Positions 5,985-64,000 of a DNA stretch of 64,000 bases are shown piece after piece. The number at the start of each line of letters is the position of its first letter. Position 1 is the stretch's first letter. The notes beneath the pieces are model-generated. The model ran no database searches. It had not been told where the DNA came from and worked only from the letters and a program-made list of their open reading frames with translations. The translations under genes were made by a program, and so were the position numbers. The DNA is from Mobula birostris (taxonomy: Eukaryota): NCBI RefSeq assembly GCF_030028105.1, contig NC_092374.1, positions 8,980,998-9,044,997 on the forward strand. Reading direction: 5' to 3'.

Positions 5985-6033
5985 CTTCACACTACTTACC
6001 GCAACGACAAGTACAACTTTACCGAAAATCCAA

Positions 6034-6053: not shown

Positions 6054-6055
6054 CT

Positions 6056-25790: not shown

Positions 25791-25876
25791 TTGCTATGCA
25801 TGTATCAAACTTGTTTCCATATCGATAAAAACCCACGGGGAGTGTATAGCCAATTGGATGAAAGGGGGGCAGGAAG

Positions 25877-26851: not shown

Positions 26852-29394
26852 CTTGGGGGAGGAAAGAAAATCAAATTAAATTCATTGAAATTTTGACAAT
26901 TTTTATTTTAGAAAACGTCAACTTCATTATGTGACGTGTCGCAGGACCTGGGTGATCATGGTATCATGTTCATGATTGGTCTTCACAAAGTTTTCTGCCT
27001 AGGTGCCTTCTTCTGGGAAGTGTCTTTAAAAGATGGGTGACCCCAGACATTATCAATACTGTTCAGAGATTGTCTGCTTGGTGTCATTGTTTGAATAACC
27101 AGGGTTTGTGATCTGCACCAGCTGCTTGTACGACCATCCACCACCTGCTCCAGATTTGGAGGGGGGGCTGTTAGGGTGGCTAACCAGCTTCTACACCTTG
27201 CCCGAGGGTGATCTGCAGACGAGCAGAGGGCCGGAGCTCCTTACACCTCCTTTGTAGAGACGTAATTTTAGAGATACAGCGTGGAATAGGCCATACCACC
27301 CTTCCAGCCATACCGCCCAGCAAACCCTGACAACCCCAATTTACCACAAACATAATCACAGGGCAATTAACCTACTAATTGGTACATCTTGGCCTGTGGG
27401 AAGAAACTAGAGCACCCGGAGGAACCCGCTGCATTCCACAGGGAGGACGTACATACTCCTTACGGAGGACACTGGGACTGAACTCTGAACTCCGACACAC
27501 CGAGCTGTAATAGAATCACGCAAACCACTACACTACTGTGGTAAGCTAAACTGGAGTGAGATATTCCATCAGCAATCAGACTGGATCCTGATTGTAATAG
27601 TTCCCACGGTGACCGTTCATGCTGAAGGTGGATGAAGGGTACCCAGGTCGGCTGTGGACCTTGCAACACCGCGCCAGTAATCTCAGTGGCAGAATAGGGA
27701 ACTGAAACGCCGATTCAGCAGCAGGAAGTCTCTCCTTAAGCAGGGCGTGTACTCCATGGAGTTCAGAAGAATGAGGGGATGACCTCACTGAAACCTATCA
27801 AATATTGAAAGTTTAGAAAAGAAACCAGCACTGAAATTAAACAAATAGGTACGGAACTAGAAGATATTCAAGCAATTCTAACCGAACATGATAGGAAGAT
27901 AAAGGAAAATGAAGATGTTATTACTTTACTGGTCGGGAGAATGAATGGTATGTAAAAGCTATATGAAAAACAATTTAAGACCAATGAAATGATGAGACGG
28001 AAGATTATTGATTTGGAAAACAGAAGTAGGAGGAACAATTTACGAATCCTGGCATTTAAAGAACAAACGGAAGGAGATAATCCTGAAGAATTCTTTGCAA
28101 ATCTTTTGATGGAATTATTCTCTGATATTATAAAGTCTCTGCCTTTGATTTGTCATGCTCACAGGTCACCTATCTACCAATCGGCTTCAAAATCTAAACC
28201 AAGATCAGTCTTTATATGTTTCCATGAATTTCAAATAAAGGATCGGCTGATTCGTGCTGCCCGTGGAGAAGGTATGACTGACTATCAAGATCAAAGGATA
28301 CGTATTGTTCAAGATTTTTATTCAGAAGTTATGGTAGAACGTGCTAAGTTCAAAAAAGTTATGATGGAGTTATACAGTCAAAATTTTAAAGCCTCTCTTC
28401 GTTCTCCGGCTTGACTGAGGATTACACTGGAAGACGGATCATTTAAATGGTTTTATACGAAGGAACAGGCGCAAGAATCTTTAGCCTTTAAAAGAAGTGA
28501 ATGATTGTATATATATTGAATAGACTAAAAATCTTGCAAAAGCAGAAATACTACATATTAAAAAATTATTGTTTAATATTTTTAGTATGAATAATTGTTA
28601 TTTCTGTTTCATAAACCCGTCTAAGCTTGTTTCTCACTGTATTATTTAGTCTAGATTGGAAAGTAAATAACATTGAATTCTTGGAGTGGTTCCAACAGGC
28701 TTTCTAAGAGAATGTGTTTAGAGGAAGTAGATACCGGTTGCCCTATGACCGAGTTTCTTTCTTTTGGGGGGGGGGAGGGATGGAGAGTCTTTTTTTCTTC
28801 CAGCTGATTTGGGAATTTAGTCAATTCTGTTGCTTAGTTAATATATTTCAAGGTTTATTATTTGGGTTTGATATACATTTTTCTGATTGCTATTTTAATC
28901 TTTCTTATAAAGAGCCTTAAAATGGATTGAAGTATTAATTTACTTAGTTTAAAGTAAAAGGACTAAATCACTCTGTGAAAAGAAATAAGATTTTTGCCTA
29001 TATTAAAAAACTTAAGGTACCCATTGTTATTCTTCAAGAAACACTTGTACGTAATTGTGACAATTCATGCTTTTTTATCAATGGAGAGGATCTCATTTTC
29101 ATTCTTCATTTCAGGCCAAAGCAAGAGTGGTTTCGATCCTTATAGATAATAAAGTTCCCTTTGTTCAACATAAAGTAATTTCTGATACTAATGGGCATTT
29201 TTTTATAGTATCAGGGAAACTAAATAACAAATTAATGGTATTTGCCAATGTATATGCTCCGAATATAGATCACCCAGGTTTCTTTGAGCGTTTTTGAAAT
29301 TTTTTTTGCCAGATCTAAGTCCGTACTCCTTGCTGATGGGTGGAGACTTTAATTGTTTCCTAAATCCAGTTTTAGATCGTTCATTTTAGATCTC

Positions 29395-30896
29395 GTTAGA
29401 TTTGGGACTAGTTCCTGAGGATTGGAGGGTGGTTAATGTAACCCCACTTTTTAAAAAAGGAGGGAGAGAGAAACCGGGGAATTATAGACCGGTTAGCCTA
29501 ACGTCGGTGGTGGGGAAACTGCTGGAGTCAGTTATCAAGGATGTGATAACAGCACATTTGGAAAGCGGTGAAATCATCCGACAAAGTCAGCATGGATTTG
29601 TGAAAGGAAAATCATGTCTGACGAATCTCATAGAATTTTTTGAGGATGTAACTAGTAGAGTGGATAGGGGAGAACCAGTGGATGTGGTATATTTGGATTT
29701 TCAGAAGGCTTTTGACAAGGTCCCACACAGGAGATTAGTGTGCAAACTTAAAGCACATGGTATTGGGGGTAAGGTATTGGTGTGGGTGGAGAGTTGGTTA
29801 GCAGACAGGAAACAAAGAGTAAGAATAAACGGGACCTTTTCAGAATGGCAGGCAGTGACTAGTGGGGTACCGCAAGGCTCAGTGCTGGGACCCCAGTTGT
29901 TTACAATATATATTAATGACTTGGATGAGGGAATTAAATGCAGCATCTCCAAGTTTGCGGATGACACAAAGCTGGGCGGCAGTGTTAGCTGTGAGGAGGA
30001 TGCTAAGAGGATGCAGCGTGACTTGGATAGGTTAGGTGAGTGGGCAAATTCATGGCAGATGCAATTTAATGTGGATAAATGTGAAGTTATCCACTTTTGT
30101 GGCAAAAATAGGAAAACAGATTATTATCTGAATGGTGGCTGATTAGGAAAAGGGGAGGTGCAACGAGACCTGGGTGTCATTATACACCAGTCATTGAAAG
30201 TGAGCATGCAGGTACAGCAGGCGGTGAAAAAGGCAAATGGTATGCTGGCATTCATAGCAAGAGAATTCGAGTACAGGAGCAGGGAGGTACTACTGCAGTT
30301 ATACAAGGCCTTGGTGAGACCACACCTGGAGTATTGTGTGCAGTTTTGGTCCCCTAATCTGAGGAAAGACATCCTTGCCATAGAGGGAGTACAAAGAAGG
30401 TTCACCAGATTGACTCCTGGGATAGCAGGACTTTCATATGAAGAAAGACTGGATGAACTAGGCTTGTACTCGTTGGAATTTAGAAGATTGAGGGGGGATC
30501 TGATTGAAACGTATAAAATCCTAAAGGGATTGGACAGGCTAGATGCAGGAAGATTGTTCCCGATGTTGGGGGGGGGGTGTCCAGAACGAGGGGTCACGGT
30601 TTGAGGATAAAGGCAAAGCCTTTTAGGACTGAGAGTAGGAAAAACTTCTTCACACAGAGAGTGGTGAATCTGTGGAATTCTCTGCCACAGGCAACAGTTG
30701 AGGCCAGTTCATTGGCTATATTTAAGAGGGAGTTAGATATGGCCCTTGTGGCTAGGGGGATCAGAGGGTATGGAGGGAAGGCTGGTGCAGGGTTCTGAGT
30801 TGGATGATCAGCCATGATCATACTGAATGGCGGTGCAGGCTCGAAGGGCCGAATGGCCTACTCCTGCACCTATTTTCTATGTTTCTGTGTTTCTAT
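29395..30896 (+). mobile_element. Young 5'-truncated CR1 nested in L1 ORF2
   Basis: RT QHGFVKGKSCLTNL, PQGSVLGP, FADDTK; (ttctat/g)-type tail; closely similar to 47490-48985. Confidence 0.93.
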
Positions 30897-44894: not shown

Positions 44895-46030
44895 GGAAAG
44901 GAAATGATGAGTAATGTCTTTAGCCAGAGAGTGGTGAATCTGTGGAATTCATTAGCACAGACTGCTGTGGAAGCCAAGTCATTGGGTACATTTAGACCAG
45001 ATGAACATAAGAGATTGGAGTAGAATGAGGCCATTCCACCCATTGAGTCTGTATTGCAAATTCATGATGGCTGATCCATTTTCCCGCTCAAATCCATTCT
45101 CTTTACTTCTCCCTGTAACCTTTCATGCCCTGTCTAATTAATAACCTATGAATTCCACTTAAGTACTCCAAATAACCTGGCTTCCACATCCACTCTGTTT
45201 CCTCAGCACTACCTGCCCCTCCGCCTATCTTCATCCTATCTACAAACTTGGCCACCAAGCTATCTATTCCATCATCCGAATCTTTGACACAGTCCCGAAA
45301 CCGACTCCTGTGGAACAACACTAGTCACTGGGAACCAATCTGAAAAGGCAAGAAGCATTTGCCAAGAACAATTATGGTCAAAGATCATGAAAATCATGCC
45401 AGGGTTAAATTCGGGAACATTTCAAGGAGCAGAATTGTAGGGATTTAGGAGTCCTGCTCCACACACCCTTCCGTAGCAGAATCACTCTGCCCAGTTTGAG
45501 TATGGAAAGAGGAATCATGCCCAGATGATAAACAGGAAAATACAAGTGTTACATAGTCCACCCGCCCAGTAGAAAAGACCTGTACAGGAAAGCTTTCTCA
45601 CCTTTGTGTCTTTGACAGGTTCCCATCAGCATGGATGCTGTTTTGATCCAGATAGCGAGTGGTGTGAAATGGCATGGGGTTTGGGGGGGGTGGAGGTGCG
45701 GATGGGATGGGGAGGGATCTGCTTTCACATTGAGGATATTCTTGATAAAGAAGAGCTGAACACAAATACGTAATTAATCACCATCTCTTCCAGTGTTACT
45801 CCCCAGAAGCCTCCCTCTGAAGTCAGCTGTGTTGTAAACAGTAGTGTGTGGGATCTACTCCGGACTGCATGCTGAGTGGTTGCATCAGAGTTTGGTACAA
45901 AGCCTTCAATGCACAGGATCGCAAGAGGCTGCAGAGGGTTCTAGAGTTTACAGGTTCCTTCCCTGCATCGAAGACATCATCTTTAAAATGTTATTTTGCA
46001 ATCAACGTTTATGTTGCAATCTTTAGTTTA
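44895..46030. mobile_element. CR1 remnants (44895-45010 +, 45010-45320 -) and a Rex1-like remnant (~45850-46030 +)
   Basis: RVVNLWNSL; IDSLVAKFVD; QDRKRLQRV. Confidence 0.65.
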
Positions 46031-46159: not shown

Positions 46160-46208
46160 ATGCTATTCTTTCTACTTAGCGCTATTGTCCTGGGTATCTC
46201 TGCAATGT
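46160..46208 (+). CDS. Signal-peptide (leader) exon of the Siglec-15-like gene B: MLFFLLSAIVLGISAM
   Basis: ATG at 46160, 16 mostly hydrophobic codons plus 1 nt, perfect phase-1 donor T/gtaagt. Joins the 56216 exon in frame (TCC=Ser). Confidence 0.7.
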
Positions 46209-46354
46209 GTAAGTATCTTGAAATAAAAAGCAGTGAATGGTTTTTCTGACTGTCTTATCTGTGAAAAGTGTAGGAGCTGGAATGAGTTCGGAGTGGCAAC
46301 TGAGCAGGTTCAATTATGGGTCTCATGGACACACACAGTCTTTCAGAATCTGTG

Positions 46355-46357
<3 letters not shown>

Positions 46358-46410
<53 letters not shown>
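46358..46410 (+). repeat. (TG)n microsatellite
   Basis: Perfect dinucleotide run 150 bp into the predicted intron 1. Confidence 0.97.
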
Positions 46411-46413
<3 letters not shown>

Positions 46414-46444
46414 AAGGAAAACTTGAAAAATCTAATTAGAATGT

Positions 46445-48985
46445 AATGGTTGGAGTCACCAAGGCTGAAGCCTGTTCTACAGCAGTTATAATGGGTGACT
46501 TCAATCTACATGTAGATTGGGTGAACCAAATTGGTAAGGGTGCTGAGGAAGAGGATTTCTTGGAATGTATGCAGGATGGTTTTTTGAACCAACATGTCGA
46601 GGAACCAACTAGAGAGCAGGCTATTCTAGACTGGGTATTGAGCAATGAGGAAGGGTTAATTAGCAAGCTTGTCGTGAGAGGCCCCTTGGGTAAGAGTGAC
46701 CATAATATGGTGGAATTCTTCATTAAGATGGAGAGTGACATATTTAGTTCAGAAACAAAGGTCCTGAACTTAAAGAAGGGTAACTTTCAAGGTATGAGAC
46801 ATGAATTAGCTAAGATAGACTGGTAAATGACACTTAAAGGATTGACGGTGGATATGCAATGGCAAACACTTAAAGATCGCATGGATGAACTACAACAATT
46901 GTTCATCCCAGTTTGGCAAAAGAATAAATCAGGGAAGGTAGTGCGCCTGTGGCTGACAAGGGAAATTAGGGATAGTATCAATTCCAAAGAAGAAGCATAC
47001 AAATTAGCCAGAAAAAGTAGCTCACCTGAGGACTGGGAGAAATTCAGAGTCCAGAAGAGGAGGGCAAAGGGCTTAATTAGAAAGGGGGACAAAAGATTGA
47101 GAGAAAGCTGGCAGGGAAATAAAAACTGACTGTAAAAGCTTTTATAGATATGTGAAAAGAAAAAGATTGGTTAAGACAAATGTAGATCCCGCACAGACAG
47201 GAACAGGTGAATTGATTATGGGGAGCAAGGACATGGCAGACCAGTTGAATAACTACTTTGGTTCTGTCTTCACTAAGGAGGACATAAATAATCTCTGGAA
47301 ATAGTAGGGAACAGAGGGTCCAGTGAGATGGAGGAACTGAGGGAAATACGTGTTAGTAGGGAAGTGGTGTTAGGTAAATTGAAGGGATTAAAGGCAGATA
47401 AATCCCCAGGGCCAGATGGTCTGCATCCCAGAGTGCTTGAGGAAGTAGCCCAAGAAATAGTGGATGCATTAGTGATAATTTTTCAAAACTCTTTAGATTC
47501 TGGCCTAGTTCCTGAGGATTGGAGGGTGGCTAATGTAACTCCACTTTTTAAAAAAGGAGAGAGAGAGAAACCAGGGAATTATAGACCGGTTAGCCTAACA
47601 TCGGTGGTGGGGAAACTGCTAGAGTCAGTTATCAAAGATGTGACAACAGCACATTTGGAAAGCGGTGAAATCATCGGACAAAGTCAGCATGGATTTGTGA
47701 AAGGAAAATCATGTCTGACGAATCTCATAGAATTTTTTGAGGATGTAACTAGTAGAATGGATGGGGAGAACCAGTGGATGTGGTATATTTGGATTTTCAA
47801 AAGGCTTTTGACAAGGTCTCACACAGGAGATTAGTGTGCAAACTTAAAGCACACGGTATTTGGGGTAAGGTATTGATGTGGATAGAGAATTGGTTGGCAG
47901 ACAGGAAGCAAAGAGTGGGAATAAACGGGACCTTTTCAGAATGGCAGGCAGTGACTAGTGGGGTACCGCAAGGCTCAGTGCTGGGACCCCAGCTGTTTAC
48001 AATATATATTAATGACTTAGATGAGGGAATTAAATGCAGCATCTCCAAGTTTGCGGATGACACAAAGCTGGGCGGCAGTGTTAGCTGCGAGGAGGATGCT
48101 AAGAGGATGCAGGGTGACTTGGATAGGTTAGGTGAGTGGGCAAATTCATGGCAGATGCAATTTAATGTGGATAAATGTGAAGTTATCCACTTTTGTGGCA
48201 AAAACAGGAAAACAGATTATTATCTGAATGGTGGCCGATTAGGAAAAGGGGAGGTGCAACGAGACCTGGGTGTCATTATACACCAGTCATTGAAAGTGGG
48301 CATGCAGGTACAGCAGGCGGTGAAAAAGGCGAATGGTACGCTGGCATTTATAGCGAGAGGATTTGAGTACAGGAGCAGGGAGGTACTACTGCAGTTGTAC
48401 AAGGCCTTGGTGAGACCACACCTGGAGTATTGTGTGCAGTTTTGGTCCCCTAATCTGAGGAAAGACATCCTTGCCATAGAGGGAGTACAAAGAAGGTTCA
48501 CCAGATTGATTCCTGGGACGGCAGGACTTTCATATGATGGAAAGCTGGATGAACTAGGCTTACACTCGTTGGAATTTAGAAGATTGAGGGGGGATCCAAT
48601 TGAAACGTATAAAATCCTAAAGGGATTGGACAGGCGAGATGCAGGAAGATTGTTCCCGATGTTGGGGAAGTCCAGAACGAGGGGTCACAGTTTGAGGATA
48701 AAGGGGAAGCCTTTTAGGACCGAGATTAGGAAAAACTTCTTCACACAGAGAGTGGTGAATCTGTGGAATTCTCTGCCACAGGAAATAGTTGAGGCCAGTT
48801 CATTGGCTATATTTAAGAGGGAGTTAGATATGGTCCTTGTGGCTAAAGGGATCAGGGGGTATGGAGGGAAGGCTGGTGCAGGGTTCTGAATTGGATGATC
48901 AGCCATGATCATACTGAATGGCGGTGCAGGCTCGAAGGGCCGAATGGCCTACTCCTGCACCTATTTTCTATGTTTCTATGTTTCT
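46445..48985 (+). mobile_element. 5'-truncated CR1 (APE end plus RT) in predicted intron 1
   Basis: MGDFN, LGKSDH, KSPGPDG, PQGSVLGP, FADDTK; (ttctatg)n tail. Confidence 0.93.
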
Positions 48986-49689
48986 GCGCCCTTCGTCTCT
49001 GGAGGGAGAGATTTTCTCCCGAGTGGAGTTGTAGGGCGGTGTGATCCTGGCACTGCGAGTGAGAGATTTTGAAGTTGGAACAGACTCTGGGTGATTCCTT
49101 CAGGAAAGGGGGTCGTGGCCGGGCGGATTACCAATAGTGTCTCTGATAGAAACGTTCAACACCGGAATTGGTGAGGGCTAAAGGAAGAGGAAATTTCAGT
49201 GTGAGGGTCACTGAAGCTGGAAGCACGGGTAGATAAGGTTAAGGAGGCAGACAGGAAACTGGCCTTCATTATCCAGTGCATAGAGTATGAAAGCAGAGAG
49301 GTTACGGTACAAATGTATCAACTATTGGGTTAGCCACTTGCTCTGTGTGCACGTCTGATCACAACTGACAGGGAGGACACAATTGTCCCGGAAACGCTGT
49401 AGAGGAGACTCAACACTCTGTCTCCTGAGATGGAGCATTGGGTGACATCGTTCAAGTTGAAGTTTGATTACAGTTTACCCATACATAAACACCTCCAAAC
49501 AGAACAGCATTACTCGGGGGCAAGGTGCGAAACACAGTACCAACACGCTCACACAGCACAAGGCACATATAAGATAGAAAGCACATATAAGATATCAGTA
49601 AAATATAGACACTCAAAAAATATATCGTCCAAGACCATGAATGTTGCAGCACTCTCCAGTTGAACACAGTTTAGCTTGTCTTCTGCAGA

Positions 49690-50080
49690 GCGAACACGAG
49701 GGGTTGCTGGTGGTGGGGGGACATTTCTGATTGCAGTTTGGGCGCCGCGCACACAGCCCTCGGCACTCCGGTGGGGCACACGGACTCAAACGCCTCTCTC
49801 CTGGGCAGCCGTAAATAGGCGACACCGGGTCTTGTCCTCGCGATGACTGTGGTCACCCAGCTCCCCCGAAAATAAATCACTGAATCGGACTTGCAGCATT
49901 CCACTTTAACAATGTCCAGCGGGGTCTTGCGATCACAAGTAAAGCGACAAAGACCGACACTCGCTGTTGGACTGCACACTTTCACGCAGCGACCCCTGCC
50001 ACCCGGCTCTAACAGCAGGCAGCAGCACGATCCCCATCAGCAGGGAAAACTGCTGAGACGGGGGTCACTGGAGAGACATT
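49690..50080 (-). pseudogene. Decayed Ig V-set domain, B7/butyrophilin-type, with a preceding hydrophobic leader-like stretch
   Basis: Composite of frames: LLMGIVLLPAVRAG...SVGLCRFTCDRKTPLDIVKVE(C for W)CKSDSVIYFRG...KTRCRLFTAAQERG.*VRVPHRSAEG..VCAA. Contains stops and frameshifts. Confidence 0.5.
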
Positions 50081-50639
50081 GCTGTTGTTAGTGAGGGGAC
50101 TCAGCGTTCAGTGATTCACTTTTATATCAAAGACAGTAGGAAGAGACGGAGTAAAACCTTTCTCAATATCTGGTGACCGATAGTGAGGTGGGAAAGTGAT
50201 CTGGGACCCGGCACAGCGAGTCTGCAAAGGGACCGAGAGAGAGGCAGGAGAAGAAGGTACAGATGGATACAGTATAATGAGGGAGAAAGCTGCTTGTTTG
50301 AAGAACAGAACAGAATGCAGTGATGCAGCGAGTAAATGCGGGTGTACGGACGGGTCTGGTCTGTTTTTTCCCGGCACAGAGAGGAAATAGAAAGCTGAAA
50401 ATGTTGGAAAGCCTCAGTCTACGGCATCAGATCGCGAGTGCGCATGTGCCCGATCGACAGCACTGTGGAGAGATTTGGCTGTCGGTTTGAGCTGATTGGG
50501 GACTTCAGAAAGGGCAAGACAGTTGAACATGAACCAATCGTCACAGAGGGATCAGAAGTGGAGAGCGAGTGAGCAATCTCAAGTTCTTGGGTGTCAAAAT
50601 CTGTTAGGATCTAACGCGGGTCCAAAATACCGAGCGATG

Positions 50640-52395
50640 CAGCAAGACAGTGGCTATATTTCATGAGGAGTTTGAGGAGATTTTGTCTGCCACCTAAGAC
50701 ACAGGAAAACTCCTACAGCTGTACCGCGGAGAGCATTGTGCCTGGCTGATCATTGTCTGGCATGGTGTGGACTGGGCACAGCGTCGAAAGAAGCTACAGA
50801 GACTTGTAAAATTAGTCAGCTCCATCTTGTGTATTGGCCTCTGTAGTATCCAAGACATCTTCAAGGAGCGGTGGGTGAGAAAGTTACGCCCATTATGAAG
50901 GACGCCCATCATCCAGGACCCGGCCTCTTCTCCATATGACCATATAACAATCACAGCACGGAAACAGGCCATCTCGCCCCTTCTAGTCCATACCGAACGC
51001 TTACTCTCATCTAGTTCCACCGACCTGCACTCAGCCCATAACACTCCATTCCTTTCCTGTCCATATAGCTATCCAATTTTACTTTAAATGACAATATCAC
51101 ACCTGCCTCAACCACTTCTGCTGGCAGCTCGTTCCACACAGCTACCACTCTCTGAGTAAAGAAGTTCCACTCATGTTACCCCTAAACTTTTGCCCCCTAT
51201 CTCTCAACTCATGTCCTCTTGTTTGAATCTCCCCTACTCTCAATGGAAAAAGCCTATCCACGTCAAATCTATCGATCCTCCTCATAATTTTAAATACTTC
51301 TATCAAGTCCCCCCTCAACCTTCTACGCTCCAAAGAATAAAGACCCAACTTGTTCAACCTTACTCTGTAACTTAGATGCTAAAATCCAGGTAACATCCCA
51401 GTAAATCTTCTCTATACTCTCTCGATTTTGTTGACATCTTTCCTATAATTCGGTGACCAGAACTGTACACAATACTCCAAATTTGGCCTTACCAATGCCT
51501 TGTACAATTTTAACATTACATCACAACTCCTATACTGAATGCTCTGATTTATAAAGGCCAGCATACCAAAAGCTTTCTTCACCACCCTATCCACATGAGT
51601 TTCCACCTTCAGGGAACTATGCACCATTATTCCTAGATCCCTCAGTTCTACTGCATTCTTCAATACCCTACCATTTACCATGTATGTCCTATTTTGATTA
51701 GTCCTACCGAAATGTAGCACCTCACATTTATCAGCATTAAACTCCATCTGCCATCTTTCAGCCCACTCTTCTAACTGGCCTAAATCTCTGTGCAAGCTTT
51801 GAAAACCTACTTCATTATCCACAACTCCACCTATCTTAGTATCATCTGCATACTTACTAATCCAATTTACCATCCTATCATCCAGATCATTAATGTATTT
51901 GACAAACAACATTGGACCCAGTACACCACAGGTCACCGGCCTCCAATCTGACAAACAGTTATCCACCACCACTCTCTGGCATCTCACATCCAGCCACTGC
52001 TGAATCCATTTTACTACTTCAATATTAATACCTAACGATTGAACCTTCCTAACTAACCTTCCATGTGGAACCTTGTCAAAGGCCTTACTGAAGTCCATAT
52101 AGACAACATCCACCACTTTACCCTCGTCAACGTTTCTAGTAACCTCTATAAAAATTCAACAAGATTTGTCAAACCTGACCTTTCACTCACAAATCTATGA
52201 TGACTGTTCCTAATCAGACCCTGTCTATCCAGATGATTATATATAACATCTCTAAGAATACTTTCCATCAATTTACCCACCACTGATGTCAAACTCAAAG
52301 GTCGATAATTGCTAGATTTATTCTTAGAACCCTTTTTAAACAATGGAACAACATAAGCAATACGCCAATCCTCCGGCACCATCCCCATTTCTCAT
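50640..52395. mobile_element. Rex1-like remnant (~50640-50935 +) and CR1 (~50940-52395 -)
   Basis: DFSKAFDKVPHGRL, YADDTK, LVRPNLEYC on the - strand. Confidence 0.85.
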
Positions 52396-52464
52396 TCTTT
52401 CTGTCAGGAAGGAGGTACAAAAGCCTGAAGGCACACACTCAGAAATTAAGGCACAGCTTTATAA

Positions 52465-55400
52465 ACCCAAATAATCTGATTTTATGAGAATCCAAATCTT
52501 TAGCCATTACAGAGAGTAGACATTGATGTTGAATTTACCTCCGAACCCGTACCCGAGAGTCATGGAGTCTTGTCTGTTATGGTACACAACTGACCATGCC
52601 AGTTTCTGGAGAGTAGACGCTCTGACTCTCCAGATTATGGCTAGCTTGCATGGCTCCTTTAAAGACTTAGGGCTGCCCTGCCAATTCGTGGCCAAGTATT
52701 GGCGCCAGGATTTTAATATTTAAAGAGAACCTGAACTGAGATTCAGTGCTCAATCATCATTTCAACTTTGGACTCTCATCTTGCATCTCGTTTCTAACCC
52801 TGTTCTTATCTCAGTCTCATATGATGTGTCGATTCTAGTCTCAGATATTCCAACACAAGGGTCCAAACCATCCTTGCCATGGTCTCTTGTCACAATCTCA
52901 CTGGGAAACTTACTCTTCACCCCATCAAGTTCATGCAAAAAAATGCACCCACTGACATTACATCTTCATTGATCTCAATTCATTTTCCTCACACTCCCCA
53001 CAATTCTCCCAGTTTCTATTTCTCACCTACACAAGGGCAGTTTAGAAAAGACAGTTAAATAACAACCCACTTCTTCTGGATTTGTGTGGAGGGTCTGAGT
53101 AGAGACACATCATTTCATCATGTTTATTCATTTCCATAGATGCTGCCTGACCTGCTGAGTTCCTCCAGCATTTTGTGAGTGTATGTCTACATCTGCTCCA
53201 CTGTGTGTAGCCATGTCTTACTGTCAGGTAATTCATTGGAGGGAGCTTCCAGGGAAGTGATGTAAATACGAGGTCTCTCTCTCACCTCAGCTTAGAGCTG
53301 TGAGAACCATGGCTCCAGTGAAGAGCTAGCATGGCACAGGCAAGGAGAACCTCCTTGGGTTCACAGCCTCCCTTGTTCTATTTCTCTGCACTTTTGATCT
53401 CTCGGAAAGTGACACTGCACAACACTGTCATAATTCAGCCCCCTTTCAACAGGGCAGAGACTCAGGGTGGGCACATAAATCACCCATGATGGAATGATGG
53501 AGCAGAGTCGATGGGCCAAATGGTCTAGTTCTGCTCCTGTGCCTTATAGTCTTAGCACAACACTGTCGAGGGGTATACTCCCTGCCACCCGACCACTCGT
53601 GTCGATTAATTTATTTGTTACATGTACATCAAAACATACAGTGAAATGTGTCATTTGCGCCAATGACTAACACAGTCGGAGGATGTGCTGGAAGCCGCTT
53701 GCACGTAAGGCGTCACTTTACAGTACCAGTGACACAGATTCAGTTCCCACTGCTGCCTGTAAGGAGTTTGTACTTTCTCCCTGTGACCACGTGGGTTTCC
53801 TCCCACAGTCCAAAGACCTGCTGGTTAGTGGGTTAGCTGGTCATTGTAAATTGCCCCATGATTAGGCTTGGATTAAATTGGCGGTTTGCTGGGTGCCATG
53901 GCTCGAAGGGCCTTTTTTCACGGTATCTCAACAAATAAATAAAAAGTAACGCCATGTCCCAGCGCCAACATGGCATGTTCATAACTCACTAACCCTAACT
54001 GGTATGGCTTTGGAGTGTGGAGGGAAACTGGAACACCCAGAGGAAACCCACAGTTTCAGGGTGTTTGAGAGACAGGGTGAATGTACAAGCTCCTGAGAGA
54101 AGGAGGCAGGAATTGAATTCTGAACACTCACACTGTGCAGCATTGTGCTAACCACTATGTCACCGTGCTGCCCTTTCAAATCTGCTCTGATGTCAGTCAG
54201 TTATACTGGGACGTGGTGAAGTGGCCAAACTGTATTGAGAGAGAAAGAGAGAACATTGGCAGGCCAGGTTCCTGTACAGATGGGAAGTGGAAAATGTTAT
54301 CTGCAGTCAGAATTCCAAAATCTTGTTGGTGTTGAAAAAAGCTTGTTCTGCTTGCAAGGATGAGAGCCAGATGGGAGATCAGTGGACAGGTGTGAAGGGA
54401 CAAGGGAGTCACGTGGGAAGTTCTCCATAACTTCCACCATCTCCAACAGGATCCAACCACCAAGCACAGCTTTCACTCCTTCCCACTTTCAGCCTTCCGC
54501 AGGATTGCTCCCTATGTGACTCCCTTGTCAATTCATCCCTCCCCACTGATCTCCCTCCTGGCACTTATCATTGCATTGAACTTGCATTGAACCCAGGGGT
54601 TCTCTCTTCACCACAGTGGCATCTTCCTCAATCAGTATTACTGTTCAGTCTGTTGTCCTTTTCTCCTTTCTGAACATCTTCCTTCCAGGAATATCGAGTG
54701 CCCAGCCCTACCATTACTGTGAAAGATGCTGGTAGTCATTGTTACATCTTGTTTTCACACAGCCATTTCTGCCTTTGACTCACCAGCCCCGCTCAAGAAC
54801 CTTCTGTCTACACTTGCTTCTCCAGTTACATCTGCCACTCCCAATTCTTTATTCATCTTCATTGTCTTTCTGTTGTCACCTGCCCAATTAGTTCAACCTT
54901 TCCCCCACCACATCAGTGACCCTCTCCCTGATACCCGCTCATCTTGCAAGGGTTTCTCCTGCCCCAAAACTGGTCCAACACCCTACAATTAGAGCAGTAA
55001 CATTTCAAGGAGCCCTCAAGTGTTCTAAAGATCTTTATGGTGGAGCAGATGAGACATAAACACAAATAATCTGATTTTATGAGAATGCAAATCTTTAAAC
55101 ATTCCAGAGAGTAGACACTGATGATAGATTTACCTCCGAACCCATACCCGAGAGTCATGGAGTCTTGTCTGTTATGGTACACAACTGACCATGCCAGTTT
55201 CTGGAGAGTAGACACTCTGACTCTCTGGATTATGGCTAGCTTGCATGGCCCCTTTAAAGACTCAGGGCTGCACTGCCAATTGGTGGCCATGTATTGACGC
55301 CAGGATTTTAATATTTAAAGAGAACCTGAACAGAGGGTCAGTGCTCAATCACTATTTCAACTTTGGATTCTCATCTTGCATCTCACTGAGAACCCTGTCC

Positions 55401-56150
55401 TTGTCTCAGCCTCATATCCTGTGTTGATTCTAGTCTCGGATACTCCAGCACAAGGGTCCAAACCATCCTTGGCATGGTCTCTCGTTACAATATTACTGGG
55501 AAACTTACTCTTCACCCCATCAAGTTCATGCGAAAAAATGCACCCACTGACATTACATCTTCATTGATCTCAATTCATTTTCCTCACATTCCCCACAATT
55601 CTCCCAGTTTCTATTTCTCACCAACACACGGGCGGTTTAGAAAAGTCAGTTAAATAACAACCCACTTCTTCTGGATTTTTGTGGAGGGTCTGAGTAGGAG
55701 AAGCATCATTTCATCATGTTTATTCATTTCCATAGATGCTGCCTGACCTGCTGAGTTCCTCCAGCATTTTATGAGTGTATGTCTACATCAGCTCCACTGT
55801 GTGTAGCCATGTCTTACTGTCAAGTAATTCATTGGAGGGAGCTTCCAGGGAAGTGATGTAAATACGAGGTCTCTCTCTCACCTCAGCTTAGAGCTGTGAG
55901 AACCATGGCTCCAGTGAAGAGCTAGCATGGCCCAGGCAAGGAGAACTTCCTTGGGTTCACAGCCTCCCTTGTTCTATTTCTCTGCGCTTTTGATCTGTTG
56001 CAGAGTGACACTGCACAACACTGTCATAATTCAGCCCCCTTTCAACAGGGCAGAGACTCAGGGTGGGCACATAAATCACCCATGATGGAATGATGGAGCA
56101 GAGTCGATGGGCCAAATGGTCTAGTTCTGCTCCTGTGCCTTATAGTCTTA
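52465..56150 (+). repeat. Local direct duplication: ~52465-53554 and ~55060-56150
   Basis: Collinear, roughly 90% identical ~1.1-kb units about 2.6 kb apart. Confidence 0.92.
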
Positions 56151-56215
56151 GGACATGGGTCCTCTAGTGTCTGTGGCCTCAGCTCAGCATTAATACCACA
56201 CCTCTGTCTTCACAG

Positions 56216-56596
56216 CCACTGATAATAATGGATGGACCATGGAAATTCCGGACAAGGTGACAGGGAGAGAAGGGAAGTCCTTGTTTCTGTTTTGCTTTTT
56301 CGCTCCCCCTTTCAATGAATACAAGGGGAACATCAGCATCATCTGGAAGAATGCGAAGGGAAACGTGACATTTTTACATTACACCAATTATCCATCAGCA
56401 CATGGGTTTGAAAATCACATTTGGAACAACAAAGACAGTCGCTACCAAATTCTGGGGAACCCACGGAAGAACGATGCTTCAATAGTCATCAAACAACTGA
56501 GGAGCAACGAGAATGGAAAGGGATTCTGTTGTCAAATTGATTTCACAGAAGAATCAACAGGAAAATGTGAAGAAGGTATTCGAACCAAAATAACAG
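56216..56596 (+). CDS. Ig V-set exon 1, Siglec-15-like
   Basis: Acceptor ctctgtcttcacag, donor G/gtgagg, 381 nt, phase 1-1. Reads GWTMEIPDKV...LFC...ISIIWK...YQILGNPRKNDASIVI...FCCQIDF. Confidence 0.88.
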
Positions 56597-59496
56597 GTGA
56601 GGAGCAGAATCATTGCATCTGAATTCTGTTGAAGTAAAGAGATCACTGACCTCCCCCATCACTCAGTGTATTCTCCACCACTCCTGAGATCTGGGTGTCA
56701 TGAGCAGGGCTGGCAGTTGTTGTCCATTCCTGTGTCTGCTCGGGTACATCAGAGGACAATAGCATGTTGGAATGCACTCACATCTGCAAAAGAGAATTTC
56801 AGAAAGAAATTGGGAGGGAGTAAAAATGGGATTTGAAATGTTGGCAGTCAGTATAAAGGACATTCCATAATGATTGACAGGTTTATTGGAAGTAAGAGAA
56901 TGGCTAAGAAATGAGAAGATTCCTTCAGGGACGTAAAGGGAAACCTGTCAGAGATGAGTTGGGTTCCATGTAAATGAAGACTTCTTATTGGTTTCCACCA
57001 GAGGGAATGACATGGAGGGTGGAGAGTTAGGGGAAGAGTACACTGAGCCTTTGGAACATGTCTCTATAAGGAAGGAGGAGATTTCACTTATATATTTTAT
57101 TTAGCGATAAGGCTCAGAACAGGCCTTTCCTGCCCAAGGAGCCACACCATCCAGCAACACACCTATTTAACACTAGCCTCATCACAGGACAATTTACAGT
57201 GACCAACTAGTGTATGAAGCAGTCTGTCTTTGGACTGTGGGAGGAAACAGGAGCCCTGAGGGAAACCCACGTGGTTCGCGGGGAGAATGTACACACCCCT
57301 TACCAATGGAGCTGGAATTGAGCTCTGAACTCTGGAACACCCCAAGCTGTAATAGCATCACGCTAACTGCTAGACCTCTATGGTGTTGGCACACATTAAC
57401 GTGAACAAATCCCCAGGGCCTGATGGGATTTTCTCAGGATGCTATGAAAAGCAAGGGAGAAGACTGAGGCTCCACATTCGTTCCTACATCTTCATGAGAA
57501 ACACCTGCAGTCCCAAACGGCAGTCGAATAGATAATGCTCTTTCTTTAAACTACACACCACTCAGCCTTACATCAGTAGTCTTGAACTGATGGGAAAAAG
57601 TTCTGAGAGACAGCATAAATGTTCACCTGGAAAGGCACGGACTGATAGACACAAGTCAACATGCTTTAGTTCAGTGGAAATGATTTGTTACAAATCCGAG
57701 TAATTTGAGCTAAGAAGGCCGATGATGGCAGGGCAGTAAACATGTTTTACATGGACTTGAGCAAAGGTCTAGAACAAGTTACAAACGCTAGTCTAGTACA
57801 GAAAGTTAGGGCAGATGGCTTCCAAAGTGTTTTTTTAAATATTTTCTCTTCAGTGATAAGCATGGTAACAGGTCCTTCTGGCTGAATAAGTCTGTTCCAC
57901 TCAGTTACACCCATGTGGCTAATTAACCTGCTAACCTGTACGTCTATGGACGGTGACTGTGGGAGGAAACTGATACCTTGGTGGAAACTCACACAGTCAT
58001 GGGGAAAACATACAAACTCCTCACAGATAGCAATGAAATTGAACCCTGGTCCCTGGCACTAATAGCATTACGCTCACCGCTACGCTCTTGTGTTTGGCAA
58101 ACTGGATCCAAACTTCACTTGTTCGGAGACAGAGTGTAGTGGCTGAGCAAAGTTTTTTGACTGCAAGTCTGTAACCAATGGTGTATCTCAGGGACCAGTG
58201 CCTGGACCACTGTTGTTTGTCATACATATTTTATATGTGATTAACTTGGATGAGAATGCAGAAGGATTGTTCAAGAAATTTACTGATCATACTAAACTAG
58301 AGGAGCAGTATGTTGTGAGGAATGTCTTGAAAGGGACATAGTTAAGTTGGAAAAATTGGCAGAGCAGTGATAGAAGAACTTAATAACTGTTAGGTAATGC
58401 ATTCTGCCCCTCGTTCTTCTCTGTCTTCCATGGTCCACTCTCCTCTCCTCGCAGATTCCTTCTTCAGCCCTTTACCTTTTCCACTTATCACCTCACTTCA
58501 TCCTCCTCCCCACTTCCACCTGGTCTCCTCTATCATCTGCTGACTTTACTCCTTCGCAGACCTGCCTTCTTATTCTGGATTCTACCCCCTTCCGTTCCAG
58601 TACTGCTGAAGGATCTTGTCCCAAAACATTGACCGTTTATCTTTTTCAATATGATGCAGCCTGACCTGCTAAGTTCCCTAGGATTTTGTGTGTGCTATTC
58701 CAGCATCGAATACAATAAAACTGTATTGTTGTTGCTCAAAGTCAACGAGATTGTGGTGCTGCTCCAGTCCGTGCAAAACACATATTTACAATGTATACAG
58801 TATGACTGATTTTTTCAAACATCCCGTACTAGTGATTTCCTTCGTCCACAATGCTCAAAGTCCATTGGCAAGTCAGGGTGAAGCATTTGTCACGTGAACA
58901 ATGGCCCTCTTCACTCACTCTCTCCCCTCCCTGGCAGAACAAGGAGTTTCTTTGCCTCTAATGCCCCTCCTCTTTCCCTTTGGAGCAAGGAGTGTATTTG
59001 CTCCCTATTTTTCCATCCTGGAGAGGATTGGATAAGACAGAGGGAATATGTCTGAAAGGGTGAGAAGGTTTTTGATGAGATCTCTGGTTGGTGAATGAAG
59101 GGAGAAAGCTGGAGGGAGAGCACAAAAAGTGGTAGATATTTGAGCTGCAAGATGCCAACCAGAGCTCCAGAGTTACCCAGTAGATCAGGCAGAGGCCGTG
59201 TAGAGTACAACTGAACCAATAGAGCAGGAGTGGCCCATCCTGATACAAACCGAGAGAACTAGTTTGCTGAGACAGTTGTATTCACGAACACTCCATCTTG
59301 TGCACACATGGCTGAGGTGCTGTTTCCCAAGATTATAATGGGCTTCGTTAGAACAGTGCACGAGCTCAGGGACAGATGAGTCAGAGTAGGAAGTAGATGA
59401 AGAATTAAACTCATTAGCAGGGATGAAATATTGTTCAATAAAATGTGGCGAATGCAATAAACTAATCCAGATTGTCCTTACATAAAGATGTCCAAG

Positions 59497-59850
59497 GTGC
59501 CAGATTATCACCAGTGACTGTAAAGGTGGGAGATTCTGCAACACTTCCCTGCAACTTCACACCTCCTGACAAGAAACCCAGTTCCATCGGTATCATCTGG
59601 ATGAAGGGGAATCTTCCAAATGTATCCATTGTCTTCAATCAGACTCGTTACCGCTCTGCCAACCGACCCTACGCCAACACTGTAAATGAGGGAGATCGAT
59701 ATGAGCTGGTGGGAAACCCAGAGCAGGGAAATGCCTCCATCAAGGTGACGGACCTCAGACTGAACGACAACAGCAAATATTTCTGTCATGTTTGGTTCAA
59801 GAATGCCAAAACAACAGTGATTCAGGATGAGACAAGCCTGCAGGTTGAGG
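59497..59850 (+). CDS. Ig V-set exon 2, Siglec-15-like; 5' boundary uncertain (59471, 59497 or 59515)
   Basis: VTVKVGDSATLPCNF...IIWMK...YELVGNPEQGNASIKVTDLRLNDNSKYFCHVWF; strong phase-1 donor G/gtgagt. Confidence 0.85.
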
Positions 59851-61248
59851 GTGAGTAAACATCTATCTCAGCATTCTGGGAACGATATAAACACATTGAA
59901 CTTTTGTCAGAAGAAATGAGCTTGCAGTGAGGAGCTGGGGCCGAGACTGGCTCAATCCCCTTGGGCTCCATTCCTAGTCCTGGGCTCCCCAACCCCCTCA
60001 CTCAGTACCGCCCCCAGTGGACAGAGACAGTGGATTCCAATCCAGGATAGGTGGAGCTTCCTGCCACAGGTTTAGAGGTTCAGACACTCATTTGGCTGCT
60101 GAATGACCAGACTGGCCTGAGCTATTTACATCTGTGTCTGGTATTAAAGACCCAGAAGCTTCTACAGACAATCACCAATCAGTTTCCACACTTAGAATTT
60201 GTCGTCATTCTCCTGATGGGTCTCTCCCATTCTTCACCTTTCCCAGAGCTGAGGGACTTTGTTCCCATGTACTCGAGAATAACGCTCCCCAAGTCACAGC
60301 CACAACCCTGGAGTTGTCCCTTGTAACTGATATTGTAATTGGAGGGATCTCCCTCTGCTCTGTCAAGGGTTTCCTGCTGTCCAATCGGCGTTTCAGTTCC
60401 CTATTCTGCCACTGAGATTACTGGCGCGGTGTTGCAAGGTCCACAGCCGACCTGGGTAACATTCATCCACCTTCAGCATGAACGGTCACCGTGGGAACCA
60501 TTACAATCAGGATCCAGTCTGCTTGCTGATGGAATATCTCACTCCAGTTTAGCTTACCACAGTAGTGTAGTGGTTTGCGTGATGCTATTACAGATTGGTG
60601 TGTCGGAGTTCAGAGTTCATGTCCAGTGTCCTCCGTAAGAGGTCTGTACGTCCTCCCTGTAGAATGCAAAGGTTTCCTCCAGGTGCCCTGGTTTTCTCCC
60701 TCGGGCCAAGATGTACTAATTAGTAGGTTAATTGTCCTGTGATTATGTTTGTGGTAAATTGGGGTTGTCAGGGTTTGCTGGGCGGTATGGCTGGAAGGGT
60801 GGAATGGCCTATTCCACACTGTATCTCTAAAATTACGTCTCTACCAAAGGGGGTGTAAGGAGCTCCGACCCTCTGCTCACCTGCAAATCACCCTCAGGCA
60901 AGGTGTAGAAGCCGGTTAGTCACCCTAACACCCCCACCCCCCAAATCTGGAGCAGGTGGTGGATGGTCGTACGAGCAGCTGGTGCAGATCACAAACCCTG
61001 GCTATTCAAACAATGACACCAAGCAGACAATCTCTGAAGAGTATTGATAATATCAGGGGTCACCCATCTTGTAAAGACACTTCCCAGAAGAAGGCACCTA
61101 GGCAGAAAACTTTGTGAAGACCAATCATGATCATGATACCATGATCACCCAGGTCCTGCGACACGTCACATAATGAAGTTGATGTTTTCTAAAATAAAAA
61201 TTGTCAAAATTTCAATGAATTTAATTTGATTTTCTTTCCTCCCCCAAG

Positions 61249-61608
61249 TCCCGGCCACCATCCTGAGTCTAACTCTTGTGACTGATGATACTGGAGCCAC
61301 TCTCGTGTGCAAGGCTGAAGGGAACCCCCCTGCAAACATCACGTGGATTGACCTTGAGAACAGCACACTGCCCATGAGCAGCAGCGAGATGAGAATCACC
61401 GGAGATCTGGAGAGTGTGGGAAAGCTGGTGCTGCCCAGGCCGAGAGGGAGCTACCGCTGTGTGGCTGCGAATCAGCACGGAAATGACACCCGCGAGATCC
61501 ACCTAGCCAAGAAGGGAACAAGTGCTTGGGTGCTGGCTCGCTACATTGTAGTGTCCACTTTGACACTCGTTCATCTGGTTGTTTTTGTTGTCTGGTTTTT
61601 GAAGAAAG
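61249..61608 (+). CDS. Ig C2-set plus transmembrane exon, paralog B
   Basis: Acceptor ttttctttcctcccccaag, donor G/gtgagc, 360 nt, phase 1-1. TM WVLARYIVVSTLTLVHLVVFVVWFLKK. Confidence 0.88.
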
Positions 61609-62219
61609 GTGAGCTGTCCAGTGATTGGTCCATTCTTCCAGGGTCTGGGACATTTCACAGAGGGGGATAGACACAGAGGCCATTCAGTCCCATAACCCAG
61701 TTCCACCATAATTGTATGATGGCCCATATCTACTTAACCTTCTGTCAGCCCCCTTTGTTCTGGGCACAAACGCATCGGCTCATTGAAATATACATTCATC
61801 GCAATTTATAAATTCTCCCATTAGATGTGGAGAAAGTCCATCTCCAAAGAAAAGAAACAAAATTTATAAGCATGTCCACTTACCTGACTGGGAGGAAGAG
61901 CTTCTTGCCCTACTTCTGGATGGACCGGGTCTGGTCTATACTAAGTCCCTTTTGATCTGAAATCTGTGTCACAAATTGAACTGTCACACTTTCTCTCTCT
62001 CAGAATTTCTCTCATTCATGCTCTGTCTCTTTTGCTCTCTCTCAGATACATTCTCTCTCTCATTTTCACTCACTCTCACTCTTCCTCGTGCTCTCACTTT
62101 CTTGCAGTCTCTCTCTCTCTTTCTCACACACTATCTCTCTGTCTCTTGCTCTCTCTCTCGGGAATGCTTTCTCATGCGTGTATTCTCTGCTACATGCACC
62201 ACATTCTCTCTCCCTTCAG

Positions 62220-62299
62220 CCCTTTACTTCCGCCGCCCTTTCGTCCAACTGGCTACGCGCTCCCCAAAGGTCCTTTTATCAATATTGAAACAAGTTTGA
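62220..62299 (+). CDS. Candidate short cytoplasmic-tail exon (ALYFRRPFVQLATRSPKVLLSILKQV*)
   Basis: Long CT-rich tract ending cttcag; phase-1 compatible. Paralog A has a homologous segment at 25805-25876 whose acceptor would lie in the gap and which differs by indels. Confidence 0.3.
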
Positions 62300-62309
62300 T
62301 GCATGCGAG

Positions 62310-63960
62310 GCAGCACACAATGCTCTGGAGGAAGTATGCAGGCCAGGCAGCATCTACAGACGGGAATAAACAGTCAATATTTCGGTCTGAGATCCTTCCT
62401 CAGGACTGCAAAGGAAAGGGAAAGGCGGTCCGAATAAGAAAGTTGGGGGAGCGGAGGAAGAAATCAGGTGATAGGTGAAACCAGGAGAGGGGGAAGGGAG
62501 CGGCATGGGGTGAAGCAAAGAGCTGGGAGAGGGTTAGAAAACCATGGAAGAAAGGAAAGGAGGAGGAGCAGCGGATGGAGATGATTGGCAAATAAGAAGA
62601 GAAGGTGTGGGAGGGAAAGAAAAATGGGGAATGGTGAACAAAAGGTGGGGAAAACAATTGCCGAAAGTTCGTGAAATTGATATTCATGTCATCAGGTTGG
62701 AGGCTATCCAGACAGAATATAATGTGTTTCTCCTCCAAACTGAGTGTGGCCTCATTGTAGTAGTAGAGGAGGCCATGGACTGACATGTTGAAATGTTAAT
62801 AGGAAGTAGAATTGAAATGGGTGGCTCCCGGGATATCCTCACTTTTCTGGCAGACAGAGTGTAGGAATTTGGCGAAATTGTCTCCTAATCTATATCGGGT
62901 CTCAGTAATATACAGGAGGCCACACCAGGAACAGTAGATGACACCAACTGACTCACGGATGAAGTGCTTCTTAACCTGGAAGATTGTGATTGAGGAGATC
63001 TAGGGGCAAACATGCCACTTGTTCTACTTCCAAGGAGAGGTGTCGGTGGGGAGATTGGTCAGGAGAGGTGAGTGGACAAGAGAGTTGTGTAGGGACCGAT
63101 CTCTGCGGCAAGTGTTTGCGAGAGAAAGATGTGCTTGGTGGTGTGATCCTGTTGGAGATAGTGGAGTTACAGAGAATTATATGCTGGATGCGAAGGCTTG
63201 TGGGGTGATAACTGAGGACAAGTGGAACACTATCCCTGGTGTGGCAATGGGAGGATGAGGTGAGGGCAGATGTGCACGAAATGCAAGAGATACAGGAGAG
63301 GGCAGCATTGAAGGTGGAGGAAGGGAAGCCCCGTTCTTTGAAGTAGGACATCTCAGTTCTTTCTAGAAGGTAAAGCTTCATCCTGCGATGCAGTGGATAC
63401 AGAGATCTGAGAAAAGGGAATGGCATTTTTACAAGAGATTGTTTGTGAAGAGGTATAGTCAAGACAGCTGTAAGAAACAATCAGTTTATAAAAGGTATCA
63501 GCAGATAGATTGTCTCCAGAGATAGAGAGATTGAGAAAGGGGAAAAAGGTGTCAGAAATAGACCAAGTGAGTTTGAGGGCAGGGTGGAAGTTGGAGCAAA
63601 ATTCATTAAATTGATGAGTTTAGCATCAGTGCAGGAGGCAGCTCCAATATTATCGTCAATGTAGTATTGGAAGAATTGGAGAGCAGTGCCGGTGTAGGCT
63701 TGGAAAATGAACTGTTCCACGTTGCCAATAAAAAGTCAGGTATAGCTGGGACCCATGCAAGTGCTGTGGTTATACCTTGGGTTTGAAAGAAGTGGAGGAG
63801 ATGAAGGAGAAATTGTTGAAGGCGAGGACCAGCACTGCCAGATGAAGGAGAGTGGCGGTGGAGAGGCACTAGTTGGGTCTGTTGTCCAGAAAGAAATGGA
63901 GAGCTTTAAAGTTTTCCTGATGGGAGATAGAAGTATATAGGGACTGGACATGCATACTGA
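62310..63960 (-). mobile_element. Old degraded Penelope-like element, probably the same insertion as 22140-25790
   Basis: RT/GIY-YIG remnants, hammerhead relic at 62371-62408, same junction position relative to the C2-TM exon as in paralog A. Confidence 0.82.
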
Positions 63961-64000
63961 ATAAATACATGTGTTCTTTTATAGATATGGAAACATTTGA

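Follow-up and report, generated by a model that had tools for sequence, protein, structure and literature searches.

The window analysed here, 64,000 nucleotides of the forward strand of contig NC_092374.1 of the manta ray Mobula birostris (positions 8,980,998–9,044,997; all coordinates below are counted within it), holds a real gene for a type I membrane receptor related to Siglec-15. The predicted protein consists of a signal peptide, two V-set immunoglobulin (Ig) domains (V1 and V2), a C2 domain, a stalk, and a transmembrane (TM) segment. Its four exons have canonical splice sites (8/8 intact) and join into one open frame of 384 residues, read directly from the DNA (Table 1). This layout, with a leader and three Ig exons in frame, had been proposed in the preliminary description, and the splice sites, the open frame, and a 100% match to a RefSeq protein bear it out. 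Its exon coordinates hold for exon 1 and for the starts of exons 2 and 4, but not for the acceptor of exon 3, which had been placed at ~59497. That site and 59488 are both in frame, the latter adding Asp-Val-Gln. RefSeq takes 59488, as does the splice junction in an RNA contig of a paralog (56596→59488, GT..AG). As had also been noted, C2 and TM lie together on one exon, an arrangement that we take to hold for human Siglec-15 as well.

Table 1. Exons of the receptor gene and related features in the window (+, forward; −, reverse strand).
Feature	Position	Strand	Length	Content	Boundaries
Exon 1	46160–46208	+	49 nt	ATG and signal peptide MLFFLLSAIVLGISAM, then split codon	Donor GTAAGT; phase 1 end
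Exon 2	56216–56596	+	381 nt	V1 (V-set); Gln at the essential-Arg site (FCCQIDF)	Acceptor CACAG; donor GTGAGG
Exon 3	59488–59850	+		V2 (V-set); His at the Arg position (FCHVWF)	Acceptor AG at 59486–59487; donor GTGAGT
Exon 4	61249–61608	+	360 nt	C2/I-set, stalk, and TM AWVLARYIVVSTLTLVHLVVFVVWF, then LKK	Acceptor CCAAG; donor GTGAGC; phase 1 end
Candidate terminal exon, unsupported	62220–62299	+		Open frame; would add ALYFRRPFVQLATRSPKVLLSILKQV and a stop	Good acceptor
Orphan C2-stalk-TM exon	26493–26849	−		TM ALMLARYIVVSTLAVVNLVVFVAWS; 92% amino acid identity to exon 4 (tblastn)	Intact; both splice sites present
Inverted segmental duplicate of 60371–63912	22153–27727	−		Found by self-blastn; carries the orphan exon; N gap at 25877–26012	

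The leader encoded by exon 1 is the sole leader-like match in the window (tblastn, E 3e-6; likewise by blastn), and 11 of its 16 residues are those of the leaders of two relatives, P0107 from the stingray Hemitrygon and P0108 from Pristis, a homology that supports the exon. Among the Ig exons, exon 2 scores 25 bits against the Pfam V-set profile, just below the cut-off of 26 bits, exon 3 scores 59 bits against the same profile, and exon 4 matches Ig_3/I-set. The AlphaFold2 model contains a helix at residues 333–359, corresponding to the TM, in which an Arg lies close to the outer end and a His further inside, with no Lys.

Residues 25–384 of the predicted protein are 100% identical to residues 1–360 of XP_072113536.1, an 874-residue "uncharacterized protein" of M. 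birostris, and the exon set is therefore not a product of chance. The receptor is thus already present in RefSeq, unnamed and most likely fused wrongly to its neighbour. Residues 361–726 of the same entry form a second V1-V2-C2-TM unit, 90% identical to the first over 379 aligned residues and followed by a tail of 148 residues. This second unit, hereafter copy 2, is the tandem neighbour lying past the 3' end of the window. Its TM is uncharged and two residues shorter than that of the window copy, and its tail bears four or five YxxV/I motifs (PIYSIV, PVYSIV, GLYSKV, AIYATV). The identity between the two neighbouring copies is uneven along the protein: it reaches 95.8% in V1, 95.8% in V2, and 96.6% in C2, that is, ~96% across the ectodomains, against about 62–66% in the stalk and TM.

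This combination suggests that the window copy and copy 2 form an activating/inhibitory receptor pair whose ectodomains are kept alike by gene conversion, a reading to which we assign a probability of roughly 0.6. In such a pair, the activating-type role would fall to the window copy, whose TM Arg would hold a signalling adaptor with an immunoreceptor tyrosine-based activation motif. Copy 2, with its uncharged TM and its long multi-tyrosine tail, would act as the inhibitory-type partner. Gene conversion is known to homogenise paired Siglecs, as in Siglec-5/14 and Siglec-11/16 (PMC5701461, PMC4042635). Like these primate pairs, the manta ray copies are neighbouring genes with near-identical ectodomains and conversion-like identity, one with a charged TM and the other with a tail of tyrosine motifs. 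Unlike them, they would have arisen independently and on another branch of the Siglecs, and both partners are devoid of the lectin Arg.

The closest full-length relative outside Mobula helps to date these features. This is P0107 from Hemitrygon akajei, named "CD276 antigen-like", which is 69% identical to the window copy and shares with it the same leader, Gln at the Arg site, and an Arg-bearing TM (ALMLARYIVF...); a 237-residue fragment from the same species, P0111, has a TM of the same type. By domain, the identity between the window copy and P0107 amounts to 53% in V1, 72% in V2, 84% in C2, and 74% in the stalk and TM. Since the TM of the window copy matches the stingray type while its ectodomains match copy 2, the TM type predates the split of the ray lineages, and the ectodomains have been homogenised within Mobula. 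P0107 differs from the window copy in its V1, only 53% identical, and in a tyrosine-free tail of 37 residues (GSCQRGCCVDS...) with no counterpart found in the window.

Several observations weigh against the pairing of the two copies as an activating and an inhibitory receptor. The Arg of the window copy lies only about five residues into the TM helix, and could snorkel to the membrane surface instead of pairing with an adaptor. In copy 2, none of the tyrosine motifs fits the strict consensus of the immunoreceptor tyrosine-based inhibition motif (ITIM), which also separates it from the inhibitory partners of the primate pairs. RefSeq gives the window copy no gene model of its own and omits its leader exon. 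Furthermore, exon 4 ends in phase 1, so a further exon must follow, and no cytoplasmic exon was found in 61609–64000 when the tails of four relatives were compared with the whole window, which returned nothing significant; the "short tail" ascribed to the window copy is an assumption taken over from the stingray protein.

The preliminary description implied that the gene ends at 62299, which was not confirmed, as 61609–62299 contains only the unsupported candidate exon of Table 1. The peptide of that candidate is without similarity to the tail of any relative and is not conserved as protein in the paralogous copy, and no RNA contig lies over it. Reading through the exon 4 donor would give the tail GELSSDWSILPGSGTFHRGG, which has no counterpart in any relative either. 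The only near hit of the tail search (tblastn, E 0.4, 45618–45647) falls about 0.5 kb upstream of the leader, at 45616–45650 on the forward strand, where a good acceptor TTTGACAG precedes the frame GSHQHGCCFD. Seven of these ten residues agree with the start of the first cytoplasmic exon of the family (GSRQHRCCVD in the neighbour, GSCQRGCCVD in the stingray), and the resemblance may be due to chance or be the relic of a duplicated tail exon.

The RNA evidence, which consists of Logan contigs from small M. birostris runs, counts against the pair as well. The contigs cover exons 2, 3, and 4, leaving out non-repetitive intron sequence, with none obtained for exon 1, and one of them joins 56596 to 59488; the preliminary description had looked to spliced reads across the predicted junctions, and this join is seen, but in a contig of copy 2. 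Every contig with diagnostic letters belongs to copy 2 rather than to the window copy. Such letters include A>G at 56506 (N to D), A>C at 56563 (K to Q), and G>A at both 59653 and 59673 (R to H and A to T). In addition, a contig over the TM carries 18 substitutions and lacks 6 nt at 61527, which correspond exactly to the two residues that copy 2 does not have. Other positions that tell the two copies apart are 56277, 56302, and 56323, along with the TM stretch 61491–61569. The splicing pattern is therefore demonstrated for the paralog, and is no proof that the window copy is expressed. Conversely, because contigs from small runs drop rare variants, the lack of window-copy contigs is no evidence that the gene is silent. 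The sole contig possibly derived from it comes from run X1: 118 of its 210 nt (56240–56357) show one mismatch to the window copy, where copy 2 should differ at three or more positions, and the remaining 92 nt have no match within 55950–61940. The contig may be chimeric, or it may stem from transcription of the window copy or of a third paralog. A contig from run X19, in turn, reaches a depth of 157 at 61264–61268, against 2–6 for the others, and matches the first part of the C2 exon apart from a 1-nt insertion offset by a 1-nt deletion; that sample therefore seems to express more strongly a different member of the family, one whose C2 exon is almost the same.

A further copy of exon 4 is found inside the window, within an inverted segmental duplicate (Table 1). 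The TM of this orphan exon carries the LARYIV motif, as in the window copy, and no V or leader exons that could belong to it on the minus strand were found anywhere in the 64 kb. The preliminary description counted at least three partial paralogs around the window; the number comes down to this partial copy inside the window and the complete one just downstream of it. The identity of the inverted duplicate to the forward copy amounts to 98.9% in the coding sequence of C2, 88.8% in that of the stalk and TM, 82–87% downstream, and 94–96% in the upstream intron, a gradient consistent with conversion or selection focused on the C2 exon. Between 61080–61608 and 26493–27020 of the minus strand, identity of ~99% reaches through the last ~180 nt of the intron, which is a conversion-like signature. 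The N gap of the inverted duplicate falls where the forward copy has a CT-rich low-complexity stretch (61990–62230).

Alternatively, the window copy may be a non-functional or decaying tandem duplicate, its ectodomain kept open only by conversion from an expressed copy 2. This explanation, which we consider fairly unlikely, draws on the assignment of all diagnostic RNA contigs to copy 2, on the terminal exon not found in the window, on the absence of a separate RefSeq model with a leader, and on the conversion-like identity gradient, while the orphan exon testifies that partial duplicates occur at the locus. On the other hand, none of the four exons or eight splice sites is damaged, the leader is conserved, and the TM, although outside the homogenised tract, has remained open and 74% identical to a stingray TM of the same type. 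Absent reads are weak evidence with contigs of this kind, and the run X1 contig is closer to the window copy than to copy 2. The pairing of an Arg-TM receptor with a long-tailed neighbour remains the preferred interpretation.

A different difficulty would arise if the RefSeq model were right, and the locus were one gene of 57 kb encoding an 874-residue protein in which two V-V-C2-TM units follow each other and share one tail. The entry exists as such, a single gene of 57.35 kb appears in the locus table, and the phase 1 end of the TM exon meets the phase 1 start of the next V1 exon, so the join is in frame. However, XP_072113536.1 begins at an internal Met within V1 and has no signal peptide, and a TM in the middle of the protein would leave the second ectodomain in the cytoplasm. 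Relatives usually have about 400 residues and one unit, and chained models occur likewise among other RefSeq relatives (P0003 and P0004 from Amblyraja). The topological implausibility of a mid-protein TM without a signal peptide, together with the rule of one-unit relatives, has led us to read the entry as a fusion of two tandem paralogs. A single gene is therefore very unlikely, and the merging of two tandem receptor genes is most likely an annotation fusion. For annotation, the window provides the start of the first unit, in the form of its leader exon, and the end of its known part.

The affiliation of the receptor with Siglec-15 rests mainly on V1. Its best sequence match in the PDB (phmmer) is human Siglec-15 (7ZOZ, E 4.6e-10), followed by CD33 and TIM-3 at ~5e-6, with Siglec-8 also among the matches. 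NITR10/11 chains reach only E 0.1–0.17, and no CD300 chain falls under E = 1, which places V1 nearer to the Siglecs than to CD300 or NITR. The AlphaFold2 model of V1 (pLDDT, the predicted local distance difference test, 89), calculated without templates but with Siglec-15 sequences within the input alignment, finds its best fold match in the same structure (Foldseek against the PDB, TM-score 0.77), and Siglec-7, CD33, Siglec-8, and sialoadhesin are also among the top 50. The N-terminal V-set is thus homologous to the V domains of Siglecs. Human motifs cited in the preliminary description (WSMQVP, AIWR, LLGNPRRNDLSL, YFCRVEF) are present in the phmmer alignment to 7ZOZ_A, and V1 resembles human Siglec-15 (Q6ZMC9, 7ZOZ) along the whole V-set through GW(S/T)M..P, FTHPH-like, I(I/T)W(K/R), RY.L.GNPR.ND.S, and FC.(V/I)(E/D)(L/F) motifs, as well as through the canonical cysteines of the B-F disulfide. 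The C2 domain is not diagnostic. The motif by which it had been likened to Siglec-15 (presumably CTAEGEPP in the human protein) is generic, the I-set domains of contactin, DSCAM, and titin outscore Siglec-15, and the identity to the C2 domains of lungfish and alligator Siglec-15 is 29%, with the lungfish alignment collinear through the stalk and TM.

A non-Siglec V-set family (CD300/MDIR, NITR, CD276/B7, JAML, or pIgR), with a merely generic likeness to Siglec-15, is a highly improbable source of the receptor. A few relatives have been automatically named "CD276 antigen-like", "JAML-like", or "pIgR-like" in RefSeq, the protein-language-model neighbours of V1 are generic V-set clusters, and a search of the PDB with the whole ectodomain fold gave only generic three-Ig arrays (IgLON, titin, JAML), which are not diagnostic. 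CD276 also tops the PDB list of V2, but only by summing two weak domains (about 22 and 18 bits), whereas the best single-domain match is the V domain of Siglec-15 with 40 bits. Among the PDB hits of V1, Siglec-15 is ahead by four orders of magnitude and shares motifs over the entire domain, and the HMMER matches described below are led by the V1-V2-C2 family of cartilaginous fishes and by proteins named Siglec-15.

Despite these similarities, the receptor exhibits clear differences from Siglec-15. The strand-F Arg (R143), essential in human Siglec-15 (PMC10264397), is present in all bony-vertebrate Siglec-15 sequences examined, but is replaced by Gln in V1 of the window copy, copy 2, and the Hemitrygon protein; V2 holds His at this position. 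The Lys in the TM of Siglec-15, which binds DAP12 (PMC6941304) and corresponds to K274, is missing, and the window copy has Arg and His at other TM positions. A second disulfide in the V domain (C95–C104 in human) is likewise absent, with both columns lacking Cys in V1 of all the chondrichthyans, whereas they are filled in most of the bony-vertebrate Siglec-15 sequences examined. The receptor also has an extra V domain (V-V-C2-TM instead of V-C2-TM), is multi-copy, and belongs to a V1 subclade apart from the Lys-TM lineage of chondrichthyans. Due to the absence of both the essential Arg and the TM Lys, it is considered a paralogous relative and not a Siglec-15. A one-to-one ortholog acting as a DAP12-signalling sialic-acid lectin is scarcely credible: V1 has its best match in Siglec-15 and many relatives bear that name in RefSeq, but the Arg and the Lys are absent, the gene is multi-copy, and sharks, rays, and chimaera possess a separate, highly conserved, short-tailed Lys-TM lineage (including P0099 from M. 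hypostoma) in the other V1 subclade.

The Gln of V1 takes the place of the arginine that contacts the sialic-acid carboxylate in Siglec-15, which makes canonical binding of sialic acid by the window receptor unlikely, and its ligand is probably something other than a sialylated glycan. V1 is the fastest-evolving domain of the protein, and it has been devoid of the Arg since before the split between manta ray and stingray (Gln in both), features more in keeping with a non-glycan ligand than with recent decay.

An exhaustive HMMER search with V1 among 1.8 billion proteins returned only 97 at E ≤ 1e-3, with XP_072113536.1 at the top. Collinear V1-V2-C2-TM relatives are found in the chimaera Callorhinchus, in the sharks Heptranchias, Cetorhinus, and Mustelus, and in the rays Pristis, Hypanus, Hemitrygon, Leucoraja, Rhinoraja, Amblyraja, Narcine, and Mobula hypostoma, most of them with E-values between 1e-155 and 1e-56 and 41–69% identity over 88–100% of the query. 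The two-V layout is therefore the norm of the lineage and at least as old as the split between chimaeras and elasmobranchs. The V duplication is ancient, judging from these sequences, and the architecture regarded as unusual in the preliminary description is the standard one of a chondrichthyan family that includes the Lys-TM lineage. The window gene is a fairly ordinary member of this large shark-and-ray gene family. Searches of the literature on Siglec-15 in sharks, cartilaginous fish, and elephant shark found no paper describing this V1-V2-C2 family.

Members of the family differ in their TM and tails. The Lys-TM lineage (e.g., XP_062903800.1 from M. hypostoma, and proteins from Hypanus, Pristis, Leucoraja, Cetorhinus, Mustelus, and Callorhinchus) has the same V1-V2-C2-TM layout and 41–54% identity to the window gene, but a nearly invariant TM IIGMLCLIPLIKFLLLLITGIILF with Lys and a tail of 4–9 residues. 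Most of its members are likewise devoid of the Arg, with Leu in its place, and the lineage looks like the functional counterpart of Siglec-15. Arg-TM forms with short, tyrosine-free tails occur in skates too (P0119, P0122), and the tail of a shark relative, P0005 from Heptranchias, contains the motifs ILYSSV and TLYSTV. The Arg is retained in V1 of this shark protein, as well as in P0108 from Pristis and P0007 from Narcine.

In a tree of 68 V domains (133 columns), the V2 domains form a clade of their own (98/94), outside V1 and the V domains of bony-vertebrate Siglec-15. V1 also forms a clade (85/84), which joins the bony-vertebrate Siglec-15 V domains (94/89) and domains from lamprey in a broader grouping with weak support (93/70). 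Together with the best sequence and fold matches, this position upholds the Siglec-15-type identity of V1 proposed earlier. Constraining V1 and V2 as one clade is 21 log-likelihood units worse, with a p-value of only borderline weight in the approximately unbiased (AU) test (p-AU 0.046). The earlier view of an expanded family with a duplicated V domain stands as far as a multi-copy family in sharks, rays, and chimaera is concerned; the duplication itself is old, and V2 is a clade of its own. In rays, V1 splits into two subclades, one comprising the Lys-TM proteins, including the "Siglec-15" of M. hypostoma and also those of sharks, and the other (100/96) comprising the window gene, copy 2, the stingray P0107, one sawfish protein, and one electric-ray protein.

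Outside tetrapods and teleosts, the number of V domains often varies. In lungfish, Siglec-15 has two recent V duplicates, both Arg-bearing, and there are a gar protein with four V domains and another lungfish protein of 1128 residues with seven (relatives P0002, P0125, and P0009). The V domains of lungfish and gar arose recently by duplication within the gene, and the lectin Arg is retained at least in those of the lungfish protein P0009.

A broader scenario, which is at present doubtful, would take the two-V layout as that of the ancestral gnathostome Siglec-15, with V2 lost in bony vertebrates. The chondrichthyan scaffold would then have repeatedly lost the Arg and diversified into Lys-TM, Arg-TM, and long-tailed forms, acting in activating/inhibitory pairs that undergo gene conversion and whose ligands would be non-glycan and perhaps of pathogen origin. 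If this were true, a paired-receptor system would have arisen on the Siglec scaffold independently of the primate pairs. What the window adds is more modest: the probable fusion of two genes in RefSeq, the missing leader, and a plausible Arg-TM/long-tail pair with homogenised ectodomains. For comparative immunology, the last of these brings a candidate pair into the shark-and-ray Siglec-15-like family, in a branch whose outer V domain had lost the lectin Arg before manta ray and stingray diverged. It does not change how such receptors are thought to work, but it offers a lead for the evolution of Siglecs and paired receptors.

The window contains no non-Ig gene by which synteny could be read, and much of the remaining sequence is repetitive. 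Two pairs of direct repeats were found, with 94% and 95% identity, respectively. The first (52461–53559 and 55056–56155) lies within intron 1, its end 60 nt short of the V1 exon, and the second (29392–30894 and 47489–48985) is an element bearing a reverse transcriptase, one copy of which is also inside intron 1. The regions at about 9–25 kb and 28–44 kb consist largely of reverse-transcriptase/endonuclease fragments of the long interspersed nuclear element (LINE) type. Similarly, long open reading frames for an integrase, a reverse transcriptase, a protease, and a zinc-knuckle Gag-like protein on the minus strand at 239–6149 correspond to a copy of a long terminal repeat (LTR) retrotransposon.

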